This document shows, piece by piece, positions 3,561-52,756 of a stretch of 64,000 nt of DNA. The stretch is from sequence record ON287376.1, one strand, 5' to 3'. The notes beneath the pieces are model-generated. The model was given only the letters and a program-made list of their open reading frames with translations. It ran no database searches and was not told the origin of the DNA. Made by a program: the position numbers and the translations under genes. The stretch's first letter is position 1. The number at the start of each line of letters is the position of its first letter.

Positions 3561-4094
3561 ATGGCACGTATCGCGTTTAACCCGGCAAACTCTGCCGATG
3601 ATGAATTCACTCGTCTCCTGGTAAATGGTACTACCATCCCAGAGCTGAAAACAATCAAACTGACCACCGACTACACCGTCACCACCCCTGCTGCCGCTAA
3701 CACCGGTGAGAAAGATGGTAACACCGTTATCGGTCTGACCCCTGCGGCTGGCAGTAAATTGTTGAAAGGCGACGCGCGTGAGTTCTACTACGATCGTCTG
3801 AGCATCGCTTCTGAACTGACCCGTAAAGCAGTTAACCTGAAGTCTGCTGACGCACTGACCCCGGCTAACCGCGACGCGTTCGCCCTGACCTGCGTAAAAG
3901 CAGTTTGGGACAAATTCGTTGCTGCTGATGTCGTGTTCAAAGAAGACAAAACTGAAGGCGAAGTTGTAGCGTACGTCTACACTATCAAAGCCGACAACAA
4001 AGTCTTCAACGGCGAATTCACTATCACTTCCGGCGACCAGACTCTCCAGTCCTTCAGCGAGAACCTGGGCGGCTTTGACGCACCGGCTGCGTAA
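3561..4094 (+). CDS. Probable virion/tail-associated protein
   Basis: Start moved to ATG 3561 (AAGGA RBS); strongly biased codons; ends in NLGGFDAPAA, sharing the LxGF motif. Confidence 0.55.
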   Translation: MARIAFNPANSADDEFTRLLVNGTTIPELKTIKLTTDYTVTTPAAANTGEKDGNTVIGLTPAAGSKLLKGDAREFYYDRLSIASELTRKAVNLKSADALTPANRDAFALTCVKAVWDKFVAADVVFKEDKTEGEVVAYVYTIKADNKVFNGEFTITSGDQTLQSFSENLGGFDAPAA

Positions 4095-44895: not shown

Positions 44896-46533
44896 ATGCG
44901 TCTCAATGAAATGCCTTTTAACATTTTCATTATGGACGTTACTCCAGAACTTATTCGTTCCATGCGAGCAACGACCACAACTGAAATTTTCGAAACGGGC
45001 ACACGTAACTTCAACCGGGACGGTTTGTTTAGCGTAGAGACTTACGGTACGCTAGGTAGCCCAGAACGTGACGGAAGATTCAGCTATATTAATTTAAACA
45101 CGTCCATTTTCCACCCTTTGATTTACAAACGTTTGGGGACATTGAAACGTCTCTATACCGAAATTATCGAAGGTACTCGTTACGCGATATTTGACGAAGA
45201 GAAAAAAGACTTCATCCCAGCCGATGAGACGGTTGGTGAAACAGGCTTTGCTTTCTTCGTTAAACATTTCCCTAACCTCGTTATAGAGGAAGGCGATTCT
45301 GAGATCCGTAACCTTCGCGTTCGCTTGATTAACGAAAACCGTAATAAAGCAATGCTCGAACGCATCTTGGTGATGCCGGCAGGTTTACGTGACCTGATTG
45401 TTGAACCGGGCACAGGAAGAACCTCAGAAGACGAGATCAACAAATTCTACCGTGCAATGATTTCCATCGCTAACGGTATCTCCGGTTCATCCACCAACCG
45501 CAATGACCCAATCATCAACTATTCTCGTCTGAGTTTACAACGTAACTTCAACGAGATCTTTGAGTACGTCTTTAACATGATTAAAGGCAAGAAGGGGTTT
45601 GCGTTGTCCAAGTGGGCATCTCGTAAAATCCTGAACGGTACCGCTAACGTAATCACGCCGATGAACGTAGGTACTGATCGCCTGGGCTCTAACCGTACTC
45701 CAGTCATCAACGACGTCCAGCTCGGTCTGTATCAAGTAATTAAAGCAGTACTTCCTAAGACACGTTACTTCATTCGTAACGGCTGGGTTGGTCAGGTATT
45801 CTCCGGTAACACCGAAGATGAAGTTCGTTTGACCGATCCTAAGACACTGCGTGCAGTATTCGTAAAACCTTCTCCAGAGTCCGTCACTCGTTGGACGACT
45901 AAAGAGGGTATCGATGCAGAGATTACTCGGTACAAGATTCTAGGTTTCCGCCAGCGTCCAATTATGGTAGATGGCTACTACCTTGGTCTGCTTTATGCCG
46001 GCCCACAAGGTTGGCGTTTCTTTGCAGATATTAATGAGCTGCCCCAAGGGTTCGACAAAAAGTACGTCTACCCTATTAACATGACCTCTCTTTATTATCT
46101 GAGTGGTTATCGTGAGTGGCACAAAATGGCCGGTATCGTTACCCGTTATCCGGTAACTGGCCCAGGCTCTACTTACATAGGAAACATCTATTGTAAGACA
46201 ACTCAGAAGACGCAATCTCTCCCTGAGTTGGACGAAAGCTGGCATCGCCTTGGTCCGGACTTCATTGCCAATGAGTTCCCAGACCAGTCGCAAAAAGCGA
46301 CTCACTATATGACCCTCAGTCCACACCCGTCACGTATCGCCCCGCTGGGCGCGGACTATGACGGTGACCGTTGTACTTTCACTGCAGTGTACGGTCGTGA
46401 TTCTCTGGAAGAGTACGAACTCATCAAGAGTAAGAAAGAGTGGTACGTATCTGCTCGAGGTAGCCTGGCACTTTCTGCTGACGTAGATAACCTCGACTTG
46501 GTACTCCGTAATATCACTGGCGGGCCGAAATAA
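44896..46533 (+). CDS. rpoC: Virion RNA polymerase beta-prime subunit, N-terminal/catalytic fragment (phiKZ gp180-like)
   Basis: GLFSVETYG, ILVMPAGLRD, KGKKGF..RK, TRYP, and catalytic GADYDGD (46351-46368). Confidence 0.92.
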   Translation: MRLNEMPFNIFIMDVTPELIRSMRATTTTEIFETGTRNFNRDGLFSVETYGTLGSPERDGRFSYINLNTSIFHPLIYKRLGTLKRLYTEIIEGTRYAIFDEEKKDFIPADETVGETGFAFFVKHFPNLVIEEGDSEIRNLRVRLINENRNKAMLERILVMPAGLRDLIVEPGTGRTSEDEINKFYRAMISIANGISGSSTNRNDPIINYSRLSLQRNFNEIFEYVFNMIKGKKGFALSKWASRKILNGTANVITPMNVGTDRLGSNRTPVINDVQLGLYQVIKAVLPKTRYFIRNGWVGQVFSGNTEDEVRLTDPKTLRAVFVKPSPESVTRWTTKEGIDAEITRYKILGFRQRPIMVDGYYLGLLYAGPQGWRFFADINELPQGFDKKYVYPINMTSLYYLSGYREWHKMAGIVTRYPVTGPGSTYIGNIYCKTTQKTQSLPELDESWHRLGPDFIANEFPDQSQKATHYMTLSPHPSRIAPLGADYDGDRCTFTAVYGRDSLEEYELIKSKKEWYVSARGSLALSADVDNLDLVLRNITGGPK

Positions 46534-46550: not shown

Positions 46551-49500
46551 GTGTCTCTGACAATGAGTAACATTACTTATCCCGAACTCTATCAACGATT
46601 CGGTATACGTTCTACTTCGGGGTTAACTACCCCGAAACTGTTTAATCTGGAGAACTTCAAACTCCCTCGTGGAGCGATCGTTCACTACCTGCCTCAGTCG
46701 GTTTCCGATTTAGGCCCGGACGATCAGTTCTTCCCGATTATCAATGAACGTCTTCGTCCCTACGTAGACCAGGTTACCGATATGACCTCCCATGAAGGCG
46801 CTCCTCGCCGTCGTGGCGCCTTTAACGTAGAGAACCTGAAGCGCCAGTGGCTGATTCGTAATCGTCGCTACAGACGCGTTACAGACATCGCCAGAGCGTT
46901 AGACGATCGTCAAACTGCAATCGTTGTTAACTACGCTTTGATCCCGATGCAATGGAAATACCAACCGGTCCCAATGGCCCGCTGGTTCCGTTTCCAAAAC
47001 CTGATGAAGACGTTCGCTGACCGTGTCAAATATTTCGGTGAACAGTCTAGCCGTCCCCAGTTCCTCTTCCTTACTCTGCCGGATGTATTACCGTCACGTC
47101 AATACCTGAACGTATCGGTTGAGGCCTACGATGTAATTCAGGATGCCCGTCAGGCTCAGCAAAGTAATCTGCAGAGCCAACAAGGCGATACTATCGCACG
47201 GTACTACGATAACCTCTATCCGGGTATCATGACTGGCCAGGGTACTGCGTTCTCTAACGAGGCGTTTGATGCCAGTGCGTTAGGTTGGGGCGATGAACCT
47301 GCGTTCGAATCCTTCGATGAATCTTCACTCTCAATGGGTGATGATGATCCGATCGTAGCCGTTGAGTCGATGAACCGTATTCGCCTGGGTTACTTCCAAG
47401 ATGACGCGTCTCTGTTCCTTTCTGATCTTTGGAAGTGGATGTCAGAGAACCGCGATGAATCCATCCTGGGTTCCATCCCAAGTAACGCATTGAAGAACCT
47501 TAACCTGGTTGTCATGCGTAATGGTAAGTTCAGCCTGCTCTCCTTCGATAAACTTGACCAATGGGTTAAGTCGGAAGAGAACGAACGCGGTATCGGTTTC
47601 GGTTCAATGTCTCAGACGATGGATCGCTACTTGCAGAACATCGTGACGACGACTTCGGTATCCGACAAAATCACTGTTGAAGAAGAAGTTGCAGAAACTG
47701 GTGAAACGGAAGTCAGTGACATTAAAGTCCCTGAACCACAACCGGGTGACCCAGATGTAGATGTCAGCGTTGGTGACAAAGGCGAAAGCGACATCGGACG
47801 TCTTCGTCGTAGCGCTCAGCGCGTAACCAAAACTCCCCGTGAGATTTTGGCAACTAAGCGCAGCGAAACACCAATTCAAAATACCGACGTCACGGCGACC
47901 ACGAGTTTCCAACCCGAGGAAACTACTGTTGTAGTAGACAAGCCTACTCCGGGTAAATCGGAAGAGGAAGTCATCGATACCAACAACCCGTTGATCAAAC
48001 CGGTTGAAAAACGTTCCCGTGATCTCCTGAGTAAAGGGCTTATCTCAGGTAACGAGTTTAAACGTCACGTACGCCTCGCTAACAGCTTCAAGAGTATCAA
48101 AGCACCATTCGGTGAAGGTACTCTGGAAGACTTCATGAAGATCCCTCACGAGCAACTGTGGGACTTTAAAGCGAAAGAGATTCCGGACATCCCTCACGTG
48201 GTCGATAAGACCATGTTGAAGTCTACCTTACTGAACTACGACCAAGATTACATCAGTAATGTCTTCCAGAAAGATGTTGCAAACATGGTCGTCAGTTTAC
48301 AGAAGGCAGGTCTGGCAATTACGGATTATCGCGTCGAGAAGAAATCCGATGCGTTGAACGACCTCTACGACTACACGATTAAAGTCGTGCCGGTCTATGG
48401 TAGTCCTTCTACTATCCGCTTCCAATTACCGGCAGTGGATAAGAATGGTAAGTATCGCGTGAATGGCACTAAGTACTTCATGCGTAAACTTAAGTTCGAT
48501 AAACCAATCCGTAAGATCTCTCCGAGCATCGTGGCGTTGTCTACGTACTACGGTAAGCTCTTCGTTGAGCGCTCTTCGCGTGCAAGTGAAGATTTGGGCC
48601 ATGTCCTTGTTGACCTGATCGAAAGGTCTAGTCAGCTCGACGTCCCTGCCGTTACCGATTTGGTACTGGGCAATACATTCACCGAAGATCAAGACGTACC
48701 GCGCGAATATTCCGCATTGGCAAAAGAGTTCGTCTCCTTTGTACTGAATGGAATCCTGTTTACATTCGACTACCCTAACCTGGCGAATAACTACACGGAA
48801 GACGTCGTAGTGGCAGCTAAGGCGAAGGGCTGGGTTCCAGTTGGTCGCAAAGGTAAAGAGTTCATCTTCATGAATAATGAAGGTAAGCTCGTCGACGCTA
48901 AAGGTAATGTGTTAGGTTCTATCAACGAGATGTTGGGATTACCTGATGAGAAACTTCCGGTTGAGCAAGTGATCGTTAAGATCATGGGCGAAGAGATTCC
49001 GATGGCTGCGATCCTCATGTATCACATGGGCATCACTAAGTTGATGAACACTCTCCCAGTAAAACCAGAGCGTCGTGTTAAAGGCACTCGCGTCGAGCCT
49101 GTCCCAGGTACGTTCGAGTTAGTCTTTGCTGATGAAGTTTGGCGCTTCCCTGTCCACGGTGGTAATAGTAGTCTGATTTGGGCTTCCCTCCAACGTTGGA
49201 AGAAATACCTCCGTAGCTTCTCTGTACAAGAGCTGGACAATCCGGACACCTTTAACCTGCTGTTCGGTATGGCTAACCTGAGTGCGCGTTACGTGCGTGA
49301 GATCGACAACATCAATGCGTTGTTCTTAGATCCTATCGCTATTGACGTACTGCGCGATATGAAAGAACCGACCGAGTTGAACGACCTGTTCATCAAGGCA
49401 GCTTTCTATCTGGTGACCGATAACTATCCGAGTGATATTTCCTCAGACGGTTCTCTGTTCCGTGGTTACGAACGTATGCCTGGCGAAGTCTACCGTACTT

Positions 49501-49922
49501 TGTCCAACGCGTATCGTTCTTACGCCAGTCAGCCTGTTAGTTCCCGTGCAACTATCGATATCCCGCCGTTTGAAGTATTGGCGGCAATCCAACGTGACCC
49601 ATCCGTCGCCATCGTTGAGGATTCTAACCCAATCCACAACCTTAAAGAGAAAGAGAACGTAACTTACTCTGGTACAGGCGGTCGGTCTAAACGTGCAATG
49701 GTTCGTCGTACTCGTGCGTTCCATAAATCAGATATCGGTATTCGTGCAGAGGCATCGGTGGATAACGGTGACGTAGGGATTAACACATTCCTTACCGCTA
49801 ACCCTAACCTGACCTCGCTTCGCGGTACAGCAGTTCCAACTGTTGATCCGGATCCGAAGAACGGTGTCGGTAACCTTCTGAGTACGTCAGCGCTCGTAGC
49901 TCCATTTGCGACATACGACGAT
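46551..49922 (+). CDS. rpoB: Virion RNA polymerase beta subunit (phiKZ gp178-like), exon 1
   Basis: Beta motifs RGYER, TYSGTGG, RAFHKSDIGIRAEASVDNGDVG; homology breaks at APFATYDD; start may be ATG 46563. Confidence 0.88.
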
Positions 49923-51604
49923 CAATATTTACTTTAGTTCAATAGTATGACGATATAATTCGGAATGCTATTATGGAAAAGACAATACCGCCGTGGACAG
50001 AATCTTCCGTAGCAGGGTTTTACCTGATTGAAGGATTCTCCAGGTACGCGGTCAATGAAGAAGGTAAAATTCTCGATTTAAAGCGAGGAGTTGAAATCCC
50101 CGTTTATCGAGACAAAAAAGGATACCAGTACAACTCAGTAGTAACCGACTCAGGTAAACGAGTGCTCTATCAACATTACCGTTTGATGATGATAGCGATG
50201 TCAGATCGACCTGACAACTACCACGAGTTGGTGATAAATCACAAAGACAACATCCATGGTCACGATGAGTTAAGTAATCTAGAGTGGTGTACGGTTTTAG
50301 AGAACAATCGACACGCCATTTCCATCGGCGCTAAACGAGTTGATTTTACGGTCGCGCCCAGAAAGAAAGTAAAGGTCTTCTTAGTTAACACTAAAGAAGA
50401 GCTCGATTTCCCTTCAGCTCGTGCAGCATCGGAATACCTTGGAATATCCCCTAAGAGACTAGATCGAATTCTTTCTCTCGATCAACCTTTCTTCCGGGGA
50501 GAATATCTGATTAAGTTAGCAAACGACCCAACGCCTTGGAGAATAATCTCCAACGATGAACCGGTCTACAATGAGACAGGCAGAATCATCTTAGTTAGAG
50601 ATGTCTTTACCGGAGAAGTCACTGAGTGGCTTTCCATGTCTCAGTACGCTAACCATATCGGGTTGTCTAAAGATGCAATCGCTTGGAGATTGAAAGATAC
50701 GAAACAACGTGTCTATCCAGAGATGAAACAATACAAGTACAAAGGCGATAACTCTCCTTGGAGAGAATTGACCCATGAGGAGAAATCCGGACTGGTCAAA
50801 CATGGTCAAGCGAATAAGATCTTTGTTCGTGACCTAAACGCCAATGAAACGTTTGAGTTCAATAGCCAAACTGAAATGGCTAACGCTCTTGGAATCTCTG
50901 TGCCTACTGTAACACTTTGGTTATCGAAGAACATCTCGGATATCAAAGGTAGTCGGTATTTGATTCATCGTGGTTTGACTGAACCTAAGTGGCGTCATGT
51001 GGAATCAATAGCTAGGGAGCTAGCGAAGAATTCACGAGCCAAAAAGGTCGTTGTAGTCACTAATCGTGACGGTACTGAATCCACCTTCTTAAGTGCAGCA
51101 GAAGCGTGCCGAGTTTACAACATCGGAACCACTACTGCAAACTGGCGGTTAAAAACCAATGGAGAGAAAGTCTATCCGGATGGTACCCGCTGGCGTTATC
51201 TTTCCAATGACTGAAGTACGGGTCGCTTCTGGGAGTAATCCCAGTCGAATAACTTCCTTAATTGCGGGAACCCACTAAAGCCACACTGCTACAACGTAAC
51301 TGGAAACGGTAAGCGTGAATGCTCTAAAAAGTGTGTGGATGTACAATGGGGAATCGAGTTCGGTAACCAATCCGATCTTTCGCAGCGAAGCCTCTACCGT
51401 ATCGTAGATACCACGGGGAACGTTCAACGACTATCGCCGTCGGGCGAGTAGGGCCAAGTGGTGCGTGAAAACGCCTGTAACGAGTTTACAGCCGAAATAG
51501 GAAGTATCCTTGTAAAGAGGGTAATGATATAGTCTCGACATCTGAGGAAAGCTCAGAGCTGCATTAGCAGGCTTAGGAATAACGAACCTAAGTGAAGATT
51601 TCTG
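49923..51604 (+). ncRNA. Self-splicing group I intron (IA2-like), 1682 nt, homing endonuclease ORF in the P1 loop
   Basis: 5' exon ends in U, intron ends in G; P AATTGCGGGAA, Q-like TTTCGCAGC, R GTTCAACGACTA, S GATATAGTCT; P3 ACTTCCT/AGGAAGT; P7 GACTA/TAGTC; splicing gives in-frame YDD-PKRVSFISIQQSH. Confidence 0.9.
49973..51214 (+). mobile_element. Intron-encoded HNH homing endonuclease (NUMOD4-HNH plus four NUMOD1/IENR1-like repeats)
   Basis: FSRYAVNEEG N-terminus; INHKDNIHGHDELSNLEWCTVLENNRHA; repeats like F.S...A...LGIS. Confidence 0.9.
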
Positions 51605-52756
51605 CCAAAGCGAGTAAGTTTCATCTCTATTCAGCAATCTCACGTTATCGCTTCTAGTGACGCAATGGTTTCTCCTATCCGTACTGGGTACGAGCAAGTC
51701 ATGGCTCACCGTGTTGACGATACCTTCGCTACCGCGGCTAAAGGCCCAGGGGTAGTGACCGAGAAAGGCCCTAACTACATGGTCGTAAAATACGACGATG
51801 AGAAATTAGGTGAGGAGCGTATCCAATTAGGTCGTCGCTTCGGTGTGGTAACTGGTCACGTTGTTCCACACGCCGTAGTATCTGAACTGGAAGTGGGTAA
51901 GCGAGTAGTAGAAGGTGAGATCGTAAGTTACCATCCTGGGTTCTTCCAGCGCGACTGGCGCGACCCGACTCAGGTGCTGTGGAAGTCAGGTACTCTGGCC
52001 AACATCGCACTGATGGAAAACAACTCGACCTTTGAGGATGCGAGTCTGATCTCCGAATCACTCTCTAAACGTCTGCACACGCCGACTAGCCATACGCGTA
52101 CTATCTTGGTTAACTTTAACCAGGGTATCCGTAATCTGGTAGCGGTTGGCGAACATGTAGATAATGAAACGGTTCTCGGCTACATTGAGGATGAGGTTTC
52201 TTCTGCGAGTGATTTGTTCGACGAGTCCACTTTGGAAGCATTGAAACGTTTGGGTTCTCCAGCTCCGCGTGCTAAGTATGTAGGAGATATCGAGAAAATC
52301 GAGGTAATCTATTTCGGTGAGAAGGAAGACATGTCTCCTTCATTACGGAAAATTGCGGATTACTACGATAACCAACGCGCCAAGCTTTCTAAGGCTTTGG
52401 GTGGTACAGAAGCGAAGACTGGGCAGATTTTCACGCCTACGCGATTGGACGGTCTCTCTATTGAGATTGATATGATGGCGATTCGTATCTACATTACCCA
52501 TGACCGCTCTATGGGTGACGGGGACAAGATCGTGGTGGGTAACCAGAAAAAGTCCGTGGTGTCTGGAGTGTTCACTGGTAAGTGCCGTACTGTCGGCCCA
52601 GTGATTCCTGGCGATAAACCATGGGACGTTGATCTCCAGTTCTCGTACAAGTCTGTAAACGCACGTATCGTAAACTCCGCGATGATGTCGGGGATGGTTA
52701 ACATCCTTCTCCAGCACATTGCCACTGCGATGCTGAACGCTTACAACGAAGAGTAG
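51605..52756 (+). CDS. rpoB: Virion RNA polymerase beta subunit, exon 2
   Basis: PKRVSFISIQQSH (equivalent to ANRALMGANMQRQ), IRTGYE, FEDASLIS, GDGDKIVVGNQKKSV; in frame with the 51665 ORF; spliced product 1507 aa. Confidence 0.88.
   Translation, partial: PKRVSFISIQQSHVIASSDAMVSPIRTGYEQVMAHRVDDTFATAAKGPGVVTEKGPNYMVVKYDDEKLGEERIQLGRRFGVVTGHVVPHAVVSELEVGKRVVEGEIVSYHPGFFQRDWRDPTQVLWKSGTLANIALMENNSTFEDASLISESLSKRLHTPTSHTRTILVNFNQGIRNLVAVGEHVDNETVLGYIEDEVSSASDLFDESTLEALKRLGSPAPRAKYVGDIEKIEVIYFGEKEDMSPSLRKIADYYDNQRAKLSKALGGTEAKTGQIFTPTRLDGLSIEIDMMAIRIYITHDRSMGDGDKIVVGNQKKSVVSGVFTGKCRTVGPVIPGDKPWDVDLQFSYKSVNARIVNSAMMSGMVNILLQHIATAMLNAYNEE

Follow-up and report, generated by a model that had tools for sequence, protein, structure and literature searches.

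Evidence for an unannotated, mobile group I intron in the virion RNA polymerase beta-like gene of Serratia phage Kodama

Layout of the locus and boundaries of the insert

The stretch of DNA that we analyzed (the window, 64,000 nucleotides, corresponding to bases 62001-126000 of sequence record ON287376.1, so that a window coordinate equals the record coordinate minus 62000) carries a gene for a beta-like subunit of the virion RNA polymerase (vRNAP), which is interrupted by an insert that itself contains an HNH endonuclease gene. The 3.7 kb that we searched around this insert are 100% identical to Serratia phage vB_SmaM-Kodama (Kodama, ON287376.1), which belongs to the genus Moabitevirus of the Chimalliviridae, the family of nucleus-forming jumbo phages. 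The record describes the locus by three coding sequences (CDSs), of which two are beta fragments and one is the HNH gene (Table 1), and contains no intron. An earlier reading of the window (the original prediction) had expected an annotation of this kind, with two broken beta genes around an unannotated group I intron. We consider it very likely that window positions 49923-51604 are a real, functional and mobile group I intron.

The first open reading frame (ORF), which can be opened at 46551 or at 46563 and runs to 49937, has the C-terminal end ..ATYDDQYLL*, i.e. ..LVAPFATYDDQYLL*, and the beta frame picks up again at 51605 with the translation PKRVSFISIQQSHVIASSD.., which opens with PKRVSFISIQQSH. 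Translation therefore confirms both frames of the original prediction, in which the ORF stops at YDDQYLL* and restarts about 1.7 kb later. In phage Moabite (MK994515), the beta gene is a single uninterrupted CDS of 4512 nucleotides, and this intronless allele reads ..ACGTATGACGAT|CCGAAGCGTGTGTCG.. across the junction, also given as ..GCGACGTATGACGAT|CCGAAGCGTGTGTCGTTC.. Kodama exon 1 (3360 nucleotides from ATG 46563) and exon 2 (1152 nucleotides) together have the same length of 4512 nucleotides, are colinear with the Moabite CDS base for base, and when joined encode a protein identical to that of Moabite across the junction. Considering this exact empty site, the insert comprises positions 49923-51604, and the alignment with an intronless homologue that had been suggested as a check places the boundaries at T49922 and C51605, as had been proposed. 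A shift of the boundary by one base is formally possible (C49923 equals C51605), but only with the choice of 49923-51604 is U the last base of the 5' exon and G the last base of the intron. When this insert is excised precisely, the host frame is restored and encodes a protein of 1503 amino acids from the annotated ATG; the frame of 1507 amino acids that had been predicted holds when it is counted from the GTG at 46551. The predicted junction peptide of the spliced product is NGVGNLLSTSALVAPFATYDDPK.

On sequence similarity, the host gene is a homologue of the vRNAP beta subunit known as gp178 in phage phiKZ and gp211-209 in phage PhiPA3. In BLASTP searches, exon 1 matches PhiPA3 gp211 (E 2e-123) in an alignment that stops at the DD of both proteins, while exon 2 matches the frame of PhiPA3 gp209 when this is prolonged as far as the splice site (E 4e-86). 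On a single PHROG profile, exons 1 and 2 are also contiguous (phrog_3148, positions 2-1050 and 1051-1422). A Pfam search found no domain in exon 1 or exon 2, and a phmmer search of the full Moabite protein against PDB gave no match; to reach bacterial beta, a piece of 330 amino acids around the junction of the intact Moabite protein was needed, which aligns to positions 539-702 of Thermus beta (E 1.6e-5). In this alignment, ..APFATYDD|PKRVSFISIQQSH.. lies opposite ..IPFLEHDD|ANRALMGSNMQTQ.., so that the site ..YDD|PKRVSF.. is the equivalent of bacterial beta HDD|ANRALMG, the position to which the original prediction had assigned it.

The frame of exon 1 meets a stop after four intron codons, and the first deposited beta CDS accordingly ends in four residues that are intron-encoded. 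Exon 2 has no in-frame start before ATG 51665, and an in-frame TGA lies four codons upstream of 51605. Together, the early stop and the missing start mean that a full-length subunit needs splicing, in line with the prediction. From ATG 51665, 20 residues of exon 2 would be lost, the number that had been foreseen; the second deposited CDS starts at 51701, however, and lacks 32.

Ribozyme core and predicted splice sites

At curated gathering thresholds, a search of the window with Rfam gave no match. With E-value thresholds, the group I intron model RF00028 matches positions 51187-51558 over its whole length (1-253) with 46.4 bits against a gathering score of 50 (E 3.5e-10 in a search of the region, 1.2e-8 in a search of the whole window), and this is the only RNA-family match in the 64 kb. 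The search that the original prediction had called for thus yields a full-length match that stays under the cut-off, a shortfall that we ascribe to large insertions in P5 and after P7 and to a spurious alignment of P1. Orthologous introns at the same site score 82.6 bits in phage 2050HW (above the cut-off), 49.0 in Totoro and 37.5 in Yaphecito. Helices P2, P3 and P7 and the core elements P (AATTGCGGGAA) and R (GTTCAACGACTA) are present where they had been predicted (Table 1), and with the model match at E 3.5e-10 they are not a chance resemblance.

To assess the core helices independently of the model, the introns of Kodama, Totoro, Yaphecito, 2050HW and PhiPA3, with ORFs removed, were aligned with MAFFT, and pairs were counted in P2, P3, P4, P5b, P6, P6a, P7, P8 and P9. 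P1 of 2050HW and PhiPA3 was misaligned by MAFFT; P1 was therefore read by hand and kept outside the formal count. Across these five orthologues and 47 core pairs, 94% of the cells hold standard pairs. Compensatory changes on both sides occur in 19 of the 47 pairs, compared with 1-3 in controls with the 3' partners displaced by one to three columns, and none of 500 shuffles attained the observed values of pairing or covariation. P7 is invariant among the five. The hairpin at P5b differs in sequence between Kodama on the one hand and Totoro and Yaphecito on the other, with its pairing kept. A minimum-free-energy fold of positions 51205-51604 recovers P2, P3, P5, P5a, P5b, P7.1, P8, P9, P9.1 and P9.2. 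The P7.1 hairpin and the further hairpins between P7 and P3' are compatible with the "IA2-like" subgroup that had been suggested.

The 5' splice site is marked by a U49922·G51222 wobble in P1, and the intron ends in G51604; the U at the exon end and the G at the intron end had been read originally. The P1 pair formed by the first intron base varies among introns at this site: it is C-G in Kodama, Yaphecito and an uncultivated phage contig, L102, U·G in 2050HW, U-A in PhiPA3 and A-U in a second contig, L015. At position -4, C-G in Kodama corresponds to U-A in 2050HW. Beyond P1, an extension of 8 base pairs (UACUUUAG with CUGAAGUA) closes the loop that contains the endonuclease gene. In Totoro, this extension reads UAUUUUAG/CUAAAAUA, with one pair changed from C-G to U-A, a compensatory change, and another from U·G to U-A; in the ORF-less intron of Yaphecito, the same stem surrounds a loop of 8 nucleotides. 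A weak P10 can be read from the sequence, in which G51220-21 could pair with C51605-06. The terminal G is shared by Kodama, Totoro, 2050HW, PhiPA3, L102 and L015, and is not found in Yaphecito and BUCT660. We assign the element to the group I introns because of the covariance-model match, the covariation, the U·G 5' splice site, the terminal G and the exact empty site in a sister phage.

The ribozyme is a mosaic: its P1-P7 half is about 95% identical to that of Yaphecito, while its P7.1 and P9 regions resemble 2050HW. More widely, stretches of 33-96 nucleotides are 77-100% identical to introns of Staphylococcus, Bacillus, Enterococcus and Lactococcus phages. Within the P5b region (51289-51330), 33-42 nucleotides show 95-100% identity to introns of many K-like and Twort-like Staphylococcus phages, with shorter and weaker matches to phages of Bacillus, Enterococcus, Lactococcus and Listeria and to Pseudomonas phages of about 73 kb (LP14, VL1) and about 210 kb (phiRU, HHBS8_1); in Totoro and Yaphecito, another hairpin takes its place. 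A blastn search for a second copy of the ribozyme in the 64-kb window found none. With the intron as query, a second match was obtained elsewhere in the Kodama record ON287376.1, beyond the window; it is probably another group I intron or HNH gene.

Table 1. Features at the interrupted vRNAP beta-like gene, in window coordinates
Feature	Position	Strand	Evidence
Upstream neighbour, RNA polymerase subunit gene (545 amino acids)	44896..46533	+	PHROG phrog_2986, E 2.4e-185; position of PhiPA3 gp212
Exon 1, vRNAP beta-like subunit (1120 amino acids, ends ..APFATYDD)	46563..49922	+	PhiPA3 gp211 BLASTP; phrog_3148; Moabite CDS
GenBank "putative RNA polymerase beta subunit"	46563-49937	+	ON287376.1
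P1 5' strand CGAU|C, 5' splice site after U49922	49919..49923	+	Pairs with GGUCG 51221-51225
Group I intron (1682 nucleotides, C49923 ... G51604)	49923..51604	+	Exact insertion versus Moabite; RF00028 match
P1 extension, 5' strand UACUUUAG	49930..49937	+	Forms a stem with CUGAAGUA, 51211-51218
HNH homing endonuclease gene (413 amino acids)	49973..51214	+	PDB 1U3E; Pfam NUMOD1; phrog_59
GenBank "putative HNH endonuclease"	49973-51214	+	ON287376.1
P1 extension, 3' strand, and internal guide sequence GGGUCG	51211-18 and 51220-25	+	Pairing with 49930-37 and, for GGUCG 51221-25, with CGAU|C
P2 hairpin CUGGGA-GUAA-UCCCAG	51229..51244	+	Both-sided changes in 4/6 pairs, five orthologues
Catalytic core	51252..51534	+	Rfam alignment, covariation, fold
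P3	51252-58/51499-505	+	Rfam alignment
P4	51263-68/51379-84	+	Rfam alignment
P5, P5a, P5b (GAAA tetraloop at 51303-06)	51271-51350	+	Rfam alignment
P6, P6a, P6b	51385-51423	+	Rfam alignment
P7	51429-33/51530-34	+	Rfam alignment
P7.1	51435-46	+	Core annotation; fold
Extra hairpins between P7.1 and P3'	51447-51498	+	Core annotation
P8	51506-22	+	Rfam alignment
P9 / P9.1 / P9.2 hairpins, then tail to terminal G51604	51542-56 / 51559-70 / 51572-92	+	P9 covaries in 3/5 pairs
Exon 2 (383 amino acids and stop, begins PKRVSFISIQQSH)	51605..52756	+	PhiPA3 gp209 BLASTP; phrog_3148
GenBank second "putative RNA polymerase beta subunit"	51701-52756	+	ON287376.1

The endonuclease gene and four alleles in Moabitevirus

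The ORF in the P1 loop, with its stop codon in the 3' half of the P1 extension stem, encodes a protein with an I-HmuI-like N-terminal region and HNH domain (PDB 1U3E, E 1.9e-7). It also matches Pfam NUMOD1 (E 2e-10), shows a weak match to the NUMOD-like domain of I-HmuI, and is covered by the HNH endonuclease profile phrog_59 (E 1.5e-26). The HNH motif is intact (..VINH90KDN..SN102LEW..EN111NRH114) and aligns with the HNH region of I-HmuI. In the comparison with the PhiPA3 intron endonuclease gp210 (25-33% identity, E 3e-26), H90 is aligned to the catalytic H82. C-terminally, four NUMOD1-type repeats of a strand and a helix-turn-helix can be read in the Kodama enzyme, compared with three in gp210 and in the 2050HW enzyme, which has 328 amino acids and is 43% identical to gp210. 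The Kodama and Totoro endonucleases are both intact and differ by 12 amino-acid against 74 nucleotide changes; identity is 97% for amino acids but 83% at 4-fold sites, which indicates purifying selection on the ORF. Upstream of the gene, a TATAAT-like hexamer lies 15 nucleotides before the ATG (within window positions 49940-49972). The 2050HW and PhiPA3 versions of the HNH gene have a Shine-Dalgarno sequence (AAGGAG and GGAGG, respectively).

Four allelic states occur at this site within the genus, among beta genes that differ by 0.8-1.6% (Totoro excepted, which is 20% diverged). The site is empty in Moabite; Yaphecito and BUCT660 have an ORF-less intron of 424 nucleotides; 2050HW, Haymo and ParM-25 share an intron of 1371 nucleotides with an HNH gene for 328 amino acids; and Kodama and Totoro carry the 1682-nucleotide intron with its 413-amino-acid HNH gene. 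Between the last two, identity is 94.4% in the intron, compared with 77.4% in exon 1 and 85.7% in exon 2. At 4-fold sites, the HNH gene has a divergence of 0.19, compared with 0.89 for exon 1 and 0.63 for exon 2. On these values, we take the intron to be 3-5 times younger than the exons around it, and younger than the genomes that carry it.

The flanks of the insertion site carry a further trace. Along the gene outside the intron flanks, there are about 50 sites at which Yaphecito agrees with Moabite and not with Kodama. Around the intron, between about -10 and about +270, this pattern is reversed, and Yaphecito agrees with Kodama at at least 15 sites. Eight of the 35 differences between Moabite and Yaphecito, all of them synonymous, fall within the 25 nucleotides between -10 and +15 (Poisson P 4e-11, or about 2e-7 when corrected for the position of this 25-nucleotide interval). 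Judged from these comparisons, such a tract is what homing leaves behind when the flanks are co-converted; alternatively, the Moabite segment may have been replaced from an intron-less donor. For the polarity of the tract, distant intron-less relatives are uninformative, since at 53% amino-acid identity or less their synonymous sites are saturated. P10 pairing was rejected as the origin of the clustered synonymous differences, as P10 spans 2 base pairs and the differences reach +15 and beyond. In combination, the presence/absence polymorphism, the co-conversion-like tract in the flanks and the young age of the intron are indirect evidence of recent mobility.

Two alleles show peculiarities of their own. 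Moabite (positions 3914-3980 of its locus sequence, L002) has synonymous differences from all intron-bearing alleles at -10, -7, +3, +9, +12 to +15, +48 and +57 (compare window positions 49913-49922 and 51605-51661), and its first 15 exon-2 bases are recoded at 6 synonymous positions, including a switch of a serine codon from TCG to AGT. This recoding could be a co-conversion footprint or a naturally endonuclease-resistant target. The ORF-less intron of Yaphecito and BUCT660 (3924-4347 of L003 and L007) is identical in these two independent isolates. Only one boundary would restore the Moabite junction, and with this boundary the intron ends in A (..GACGACTAGA|CC) and not in G, whereas in-frame splice sites after a G would put TR or TTR into the DD|PKR motif. 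In addition, an in-frame GTG 39 nucleotides upstream of exon 2 could start a separate polypeptide. This intron either has a non-canonical 3' splice site or represents a step towards a split gene.

Comparison with known introns, alternatives and consequences

The closest well-studied case is the gp210 intron of PhiPA3. Its HNH enzyme nicks intron-less PhiPA3 and phiKZ gp178 sequences, an activity that is abolished by H82R, and gives PhiPA3 an advantage over phiKZ, the only pair for which this interference competition has been shown (Birkholz et al., Science 2024; PMC11620839). Like the Kodama intron, it interrupts the orthologous host gene (gp211/gp210/gp209) at the identical point, after the second Asp codon of (Y/N)DD: the PhiPA3 sequence ..ATGAACGATGAT|tgttattg...gatctcg|ATGAAACGCGTCGGATTT.. 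encodes MNDD|MKRVGFISIQQ, with the same codon boundary as TYDD|PKRVSFISIQQ in Kodama. The occurrence of group I introns in RNA polymerase genes of phiKZ relatives had been noted in the original prediction. The two ribozymes are homologous (about 57% identity over the aligned core, with GTTCAACGACTA and GATATAGTCTCGACATCT..GGAAAGC as common elements), and in both an HNH gene lies 5' of the core and encodes a homologous HNH/NUMOD protein with the same catalytic His. Unlike PhiPA3, Kodama infects Serratia, its endonuclease is longer (413 versus 330 amino acids, with 25-33% identity and four rather than three DNA-binding repeats), and its ribozyme is enlarged by additional hairpins in P5 and between P7.1 and P3'. 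Compared with the Kodama intron, that of 2050HW, Haymo and ParM-25 is closer to the PhiPA3 intron, with an endonuclease that is 43% identical to gp210.

The surroundings of the gene are likewise conserved, with the 545-amino-acid gene followed by the beta gene in the same order as PhiPA3 gp212-gp211. In the PhiPA3 record, similarity to phiKZ gp180, gp178 and gp177 is noted for gp212, gp211/209 and gp208, respectively. The 545-amino-acid gene carries the label "RNA polymerase subunit alpha" in Moabite, Yaphecito and BUCT660 (1-534 of L002, L003 and L007) and "beta" in Kodama; judged by its position, which matches that of the phiKZ gp180-like PhiPA3 gp212, the "alpha" label looks wrong.

Other introns share parts of this arrangement. 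In 201phi2-1, the orthologous vRNAP beta subunit (gp273/274) has an intron backed by proteomics and two spliced Oxford Nanopore (ONT) reads (PMC11512511); here the likeness to Kodama, an intron in the same subunit gene of a chimallivirus, is at the level of the gene. The introns of SPO1, SP82, Bastille and Twort that encode I-HmuI, I-HmuII, I-BasI and I-TwoI also interrupt essential conserved phage genes, and nicking HNH endonucleases of the I-HmuI type belong to the same structural family as the Kodama enzyme. Unlike in Kodama, their host genes are others (DNA polymerase, ribonucleotide reductase and others) and their endonucleases are shorter, with one or two DNA-binding modules. The td, nrdB and sunY introns of T4 (subgroup IA2) resemble the Kodama intron in that they are group I introns of a phage, have extra helices between P7 and P3' and contain an ORF for a homing endonuclease, but they use GIY-YIG or other enzyme types, and their ORFs are found in the P6 or P9 loops rather than in the P1 loop. 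Moreover, T4 couples transcription to translation, whereas chimalliviruses transcribe inside the phage nucleus.

In a motif scan of IMG/VR, more than 110 contigs contained the core motif of this ribozyme class (GTTCAACGACTA...GATATAGTC), most of them in other genes. Two chimallivirus contigs from this source, L102 (813-1167) and L015 (894-1340), have ORF-less introns at the same beta codon boundary (HDD|PKRANF and NED|AKRANF), both ending in G. The literature that we searched makes no mention of an intron in Moabite, 2050HW, Kodama, Totoro or any Moabitevirus.

On the basis of these comparisons, we propose the following course of events. The beta gene would be transcribed as one pre-mRNA and, given the family assignment, this would take place inside the phage nucleus, without coupled translation. 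The ribozyme would then fold, with P1 formed between the last exon bases plus the first intron base and the guide GGUCG, a core of P3-P8, and P7 as the guanosine site. An external guanosine would attack after U49922; the terminal G51604 would next take the G site in P7, and the freed 3'-OH of exon 1 would attack after G51604. Ligation of ..GAC GAU to CCA AAG.. would give the 1503-amino-acid subunit with YDD-PKRVSFISIQQ intact, to be packaged in the virion. The HNH protein would be translated from the precursor or from the excised intron and, by analogy with gp210, may nick intron-less alleles in co-infecting relatives. Repair from an intron-bearing genome would copy the intron and some flanking exon sequence (homing); alternatively, the nicking damage may merely handicap the competitor. 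The nicking activity, its target and a competitive benefit are thus attributed to the Kodama enzyme by analogy.

Several points weigh against a functional, mobile intron. The covariance-model score does not reach the curated cut-off, and a search at the default threshold gives no match; the covariation comes from five sequences, including a pair that is 95% alike; the core has a modest thermodynamic z-score of -2.0; P10 comprises only 2 base pairs; and splicing in Kodama is read from the DNA itself. Furthermore, the endonuclease ATG 49973 has no clear Shine-Dalgarno sequence before it. Finally, the conservation of the intron could partly reflect selection on the RNA instead of recent transfer, an account that the contrast at 4-fold sites within the ORF makes less plausible.

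The alternative that survives best is an intron that splices but carries a dead endonuclease, so that it would be a vertically inherited passenger, neither mobile nor competitive. We consider this unlikely. The lack of an obvious ribosome-binding site before the gene would agree with it, and the ORF-less versions in the same genus show that an endonuclease gene can be lost. Yet the ORF has stayed intact in both Kodama and Totoro with few amino-acid relative to nucleotide changes, its catalytic His is conserved, its synonymous divergence is 3-5 times below that of the flanking exons, and a co-conversion-like tract surrounds the site.

A naturally split gene, in which two beta polypeptides are made, the HNH gene between them is free-standing and the ribozyme-like sequence is a non-functional relic, is less probable still. 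Split RNA polymerase subunits are frequent in jumbo phages, and their descent from introns has been proposed (PMC7598289); GenBank gives two CDSs, the Rfam score is under the cut-off, and the related Yaphecito intron, which has no terminal G, carries the in-frame GTG before exon 2 from which a separate polypeptide could start. However, a separate Kodama product would lack 20 residues, including the conserved PKRVSFISIQQ that is aligned with beta ANRALMGxNMQ. In addition, the core helices are kept by compensatory changes, the U·G splice site, guide sequence and terminal G are intact, and the boundaries match the uninterrupted allele to the base. Any other intervening element has a negligible chance of being correct, as nothing beyond the interruption of a gene by an element with an endonuclease ORF speaks for it: an intein is excluded by the stop after four codons of the exon-1 frame and the different frame of the HNH ORF, a group II intron by the absence of a reverse transcriptase and of a group II RNA match, and an insertion sequence by an insertion that is exact to the base without target duplication, with no transposase found.

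Accepting a group I intron, no new kind of element is at hand: the site, the gene, the ribozyme lineage and the endonuclease family are known from PhiPA3 since 2024, and an intron in the same subunit of 201phi2-1 was described earlier. What goes beyond the known case is the polymorphism of four alleles, the swap of one HNH gene for another in the same loop, the 3' end of the Yaphecito/BUCT660 intron and the recoding in Moabite. For the records of Kodama, Totoro, 2050HW, Haymo, ParM-25, Yaphecito and BUCT660, the consequence is that one spliced subunit of 1503 amino acids should stand in place of two "RNA polymerase beta" fragments; the deposited proteins of Kodama and Totoro currently lack 32 conserved residues adjoining the HDD motif.

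For the family, the findings mean that the homing site of the "weaponised" PhiPA3 intron is in use across the Chimalliviridae, in phages of Pseudomonas and Serratia and in two uncultivated members. Moabitevirus, with closely related, co-isolated phages that represent every allelic state, offers a ready system for studying endonuclease-mediated competition and exclusion between nucleus-forming phages, and the escape of targets from it. As a tentative extension, which we regard as possible but doubtful, the genus may form a natural arena of four alleles around a single homing site, located in an essential gene of the virion polymerase: two unrelated-looking HNH genes (29% identity) occupy the same P1 loop of mosaic ribozymes, an ORF-less derivative is possibly en route to a split gene, and the intron-less Moabite allele is possibly endonuclease-resistant. 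If this is true, intron endonucleases would drive both the recoding and the splitting of jumbo-phage RNA polymerase genes.

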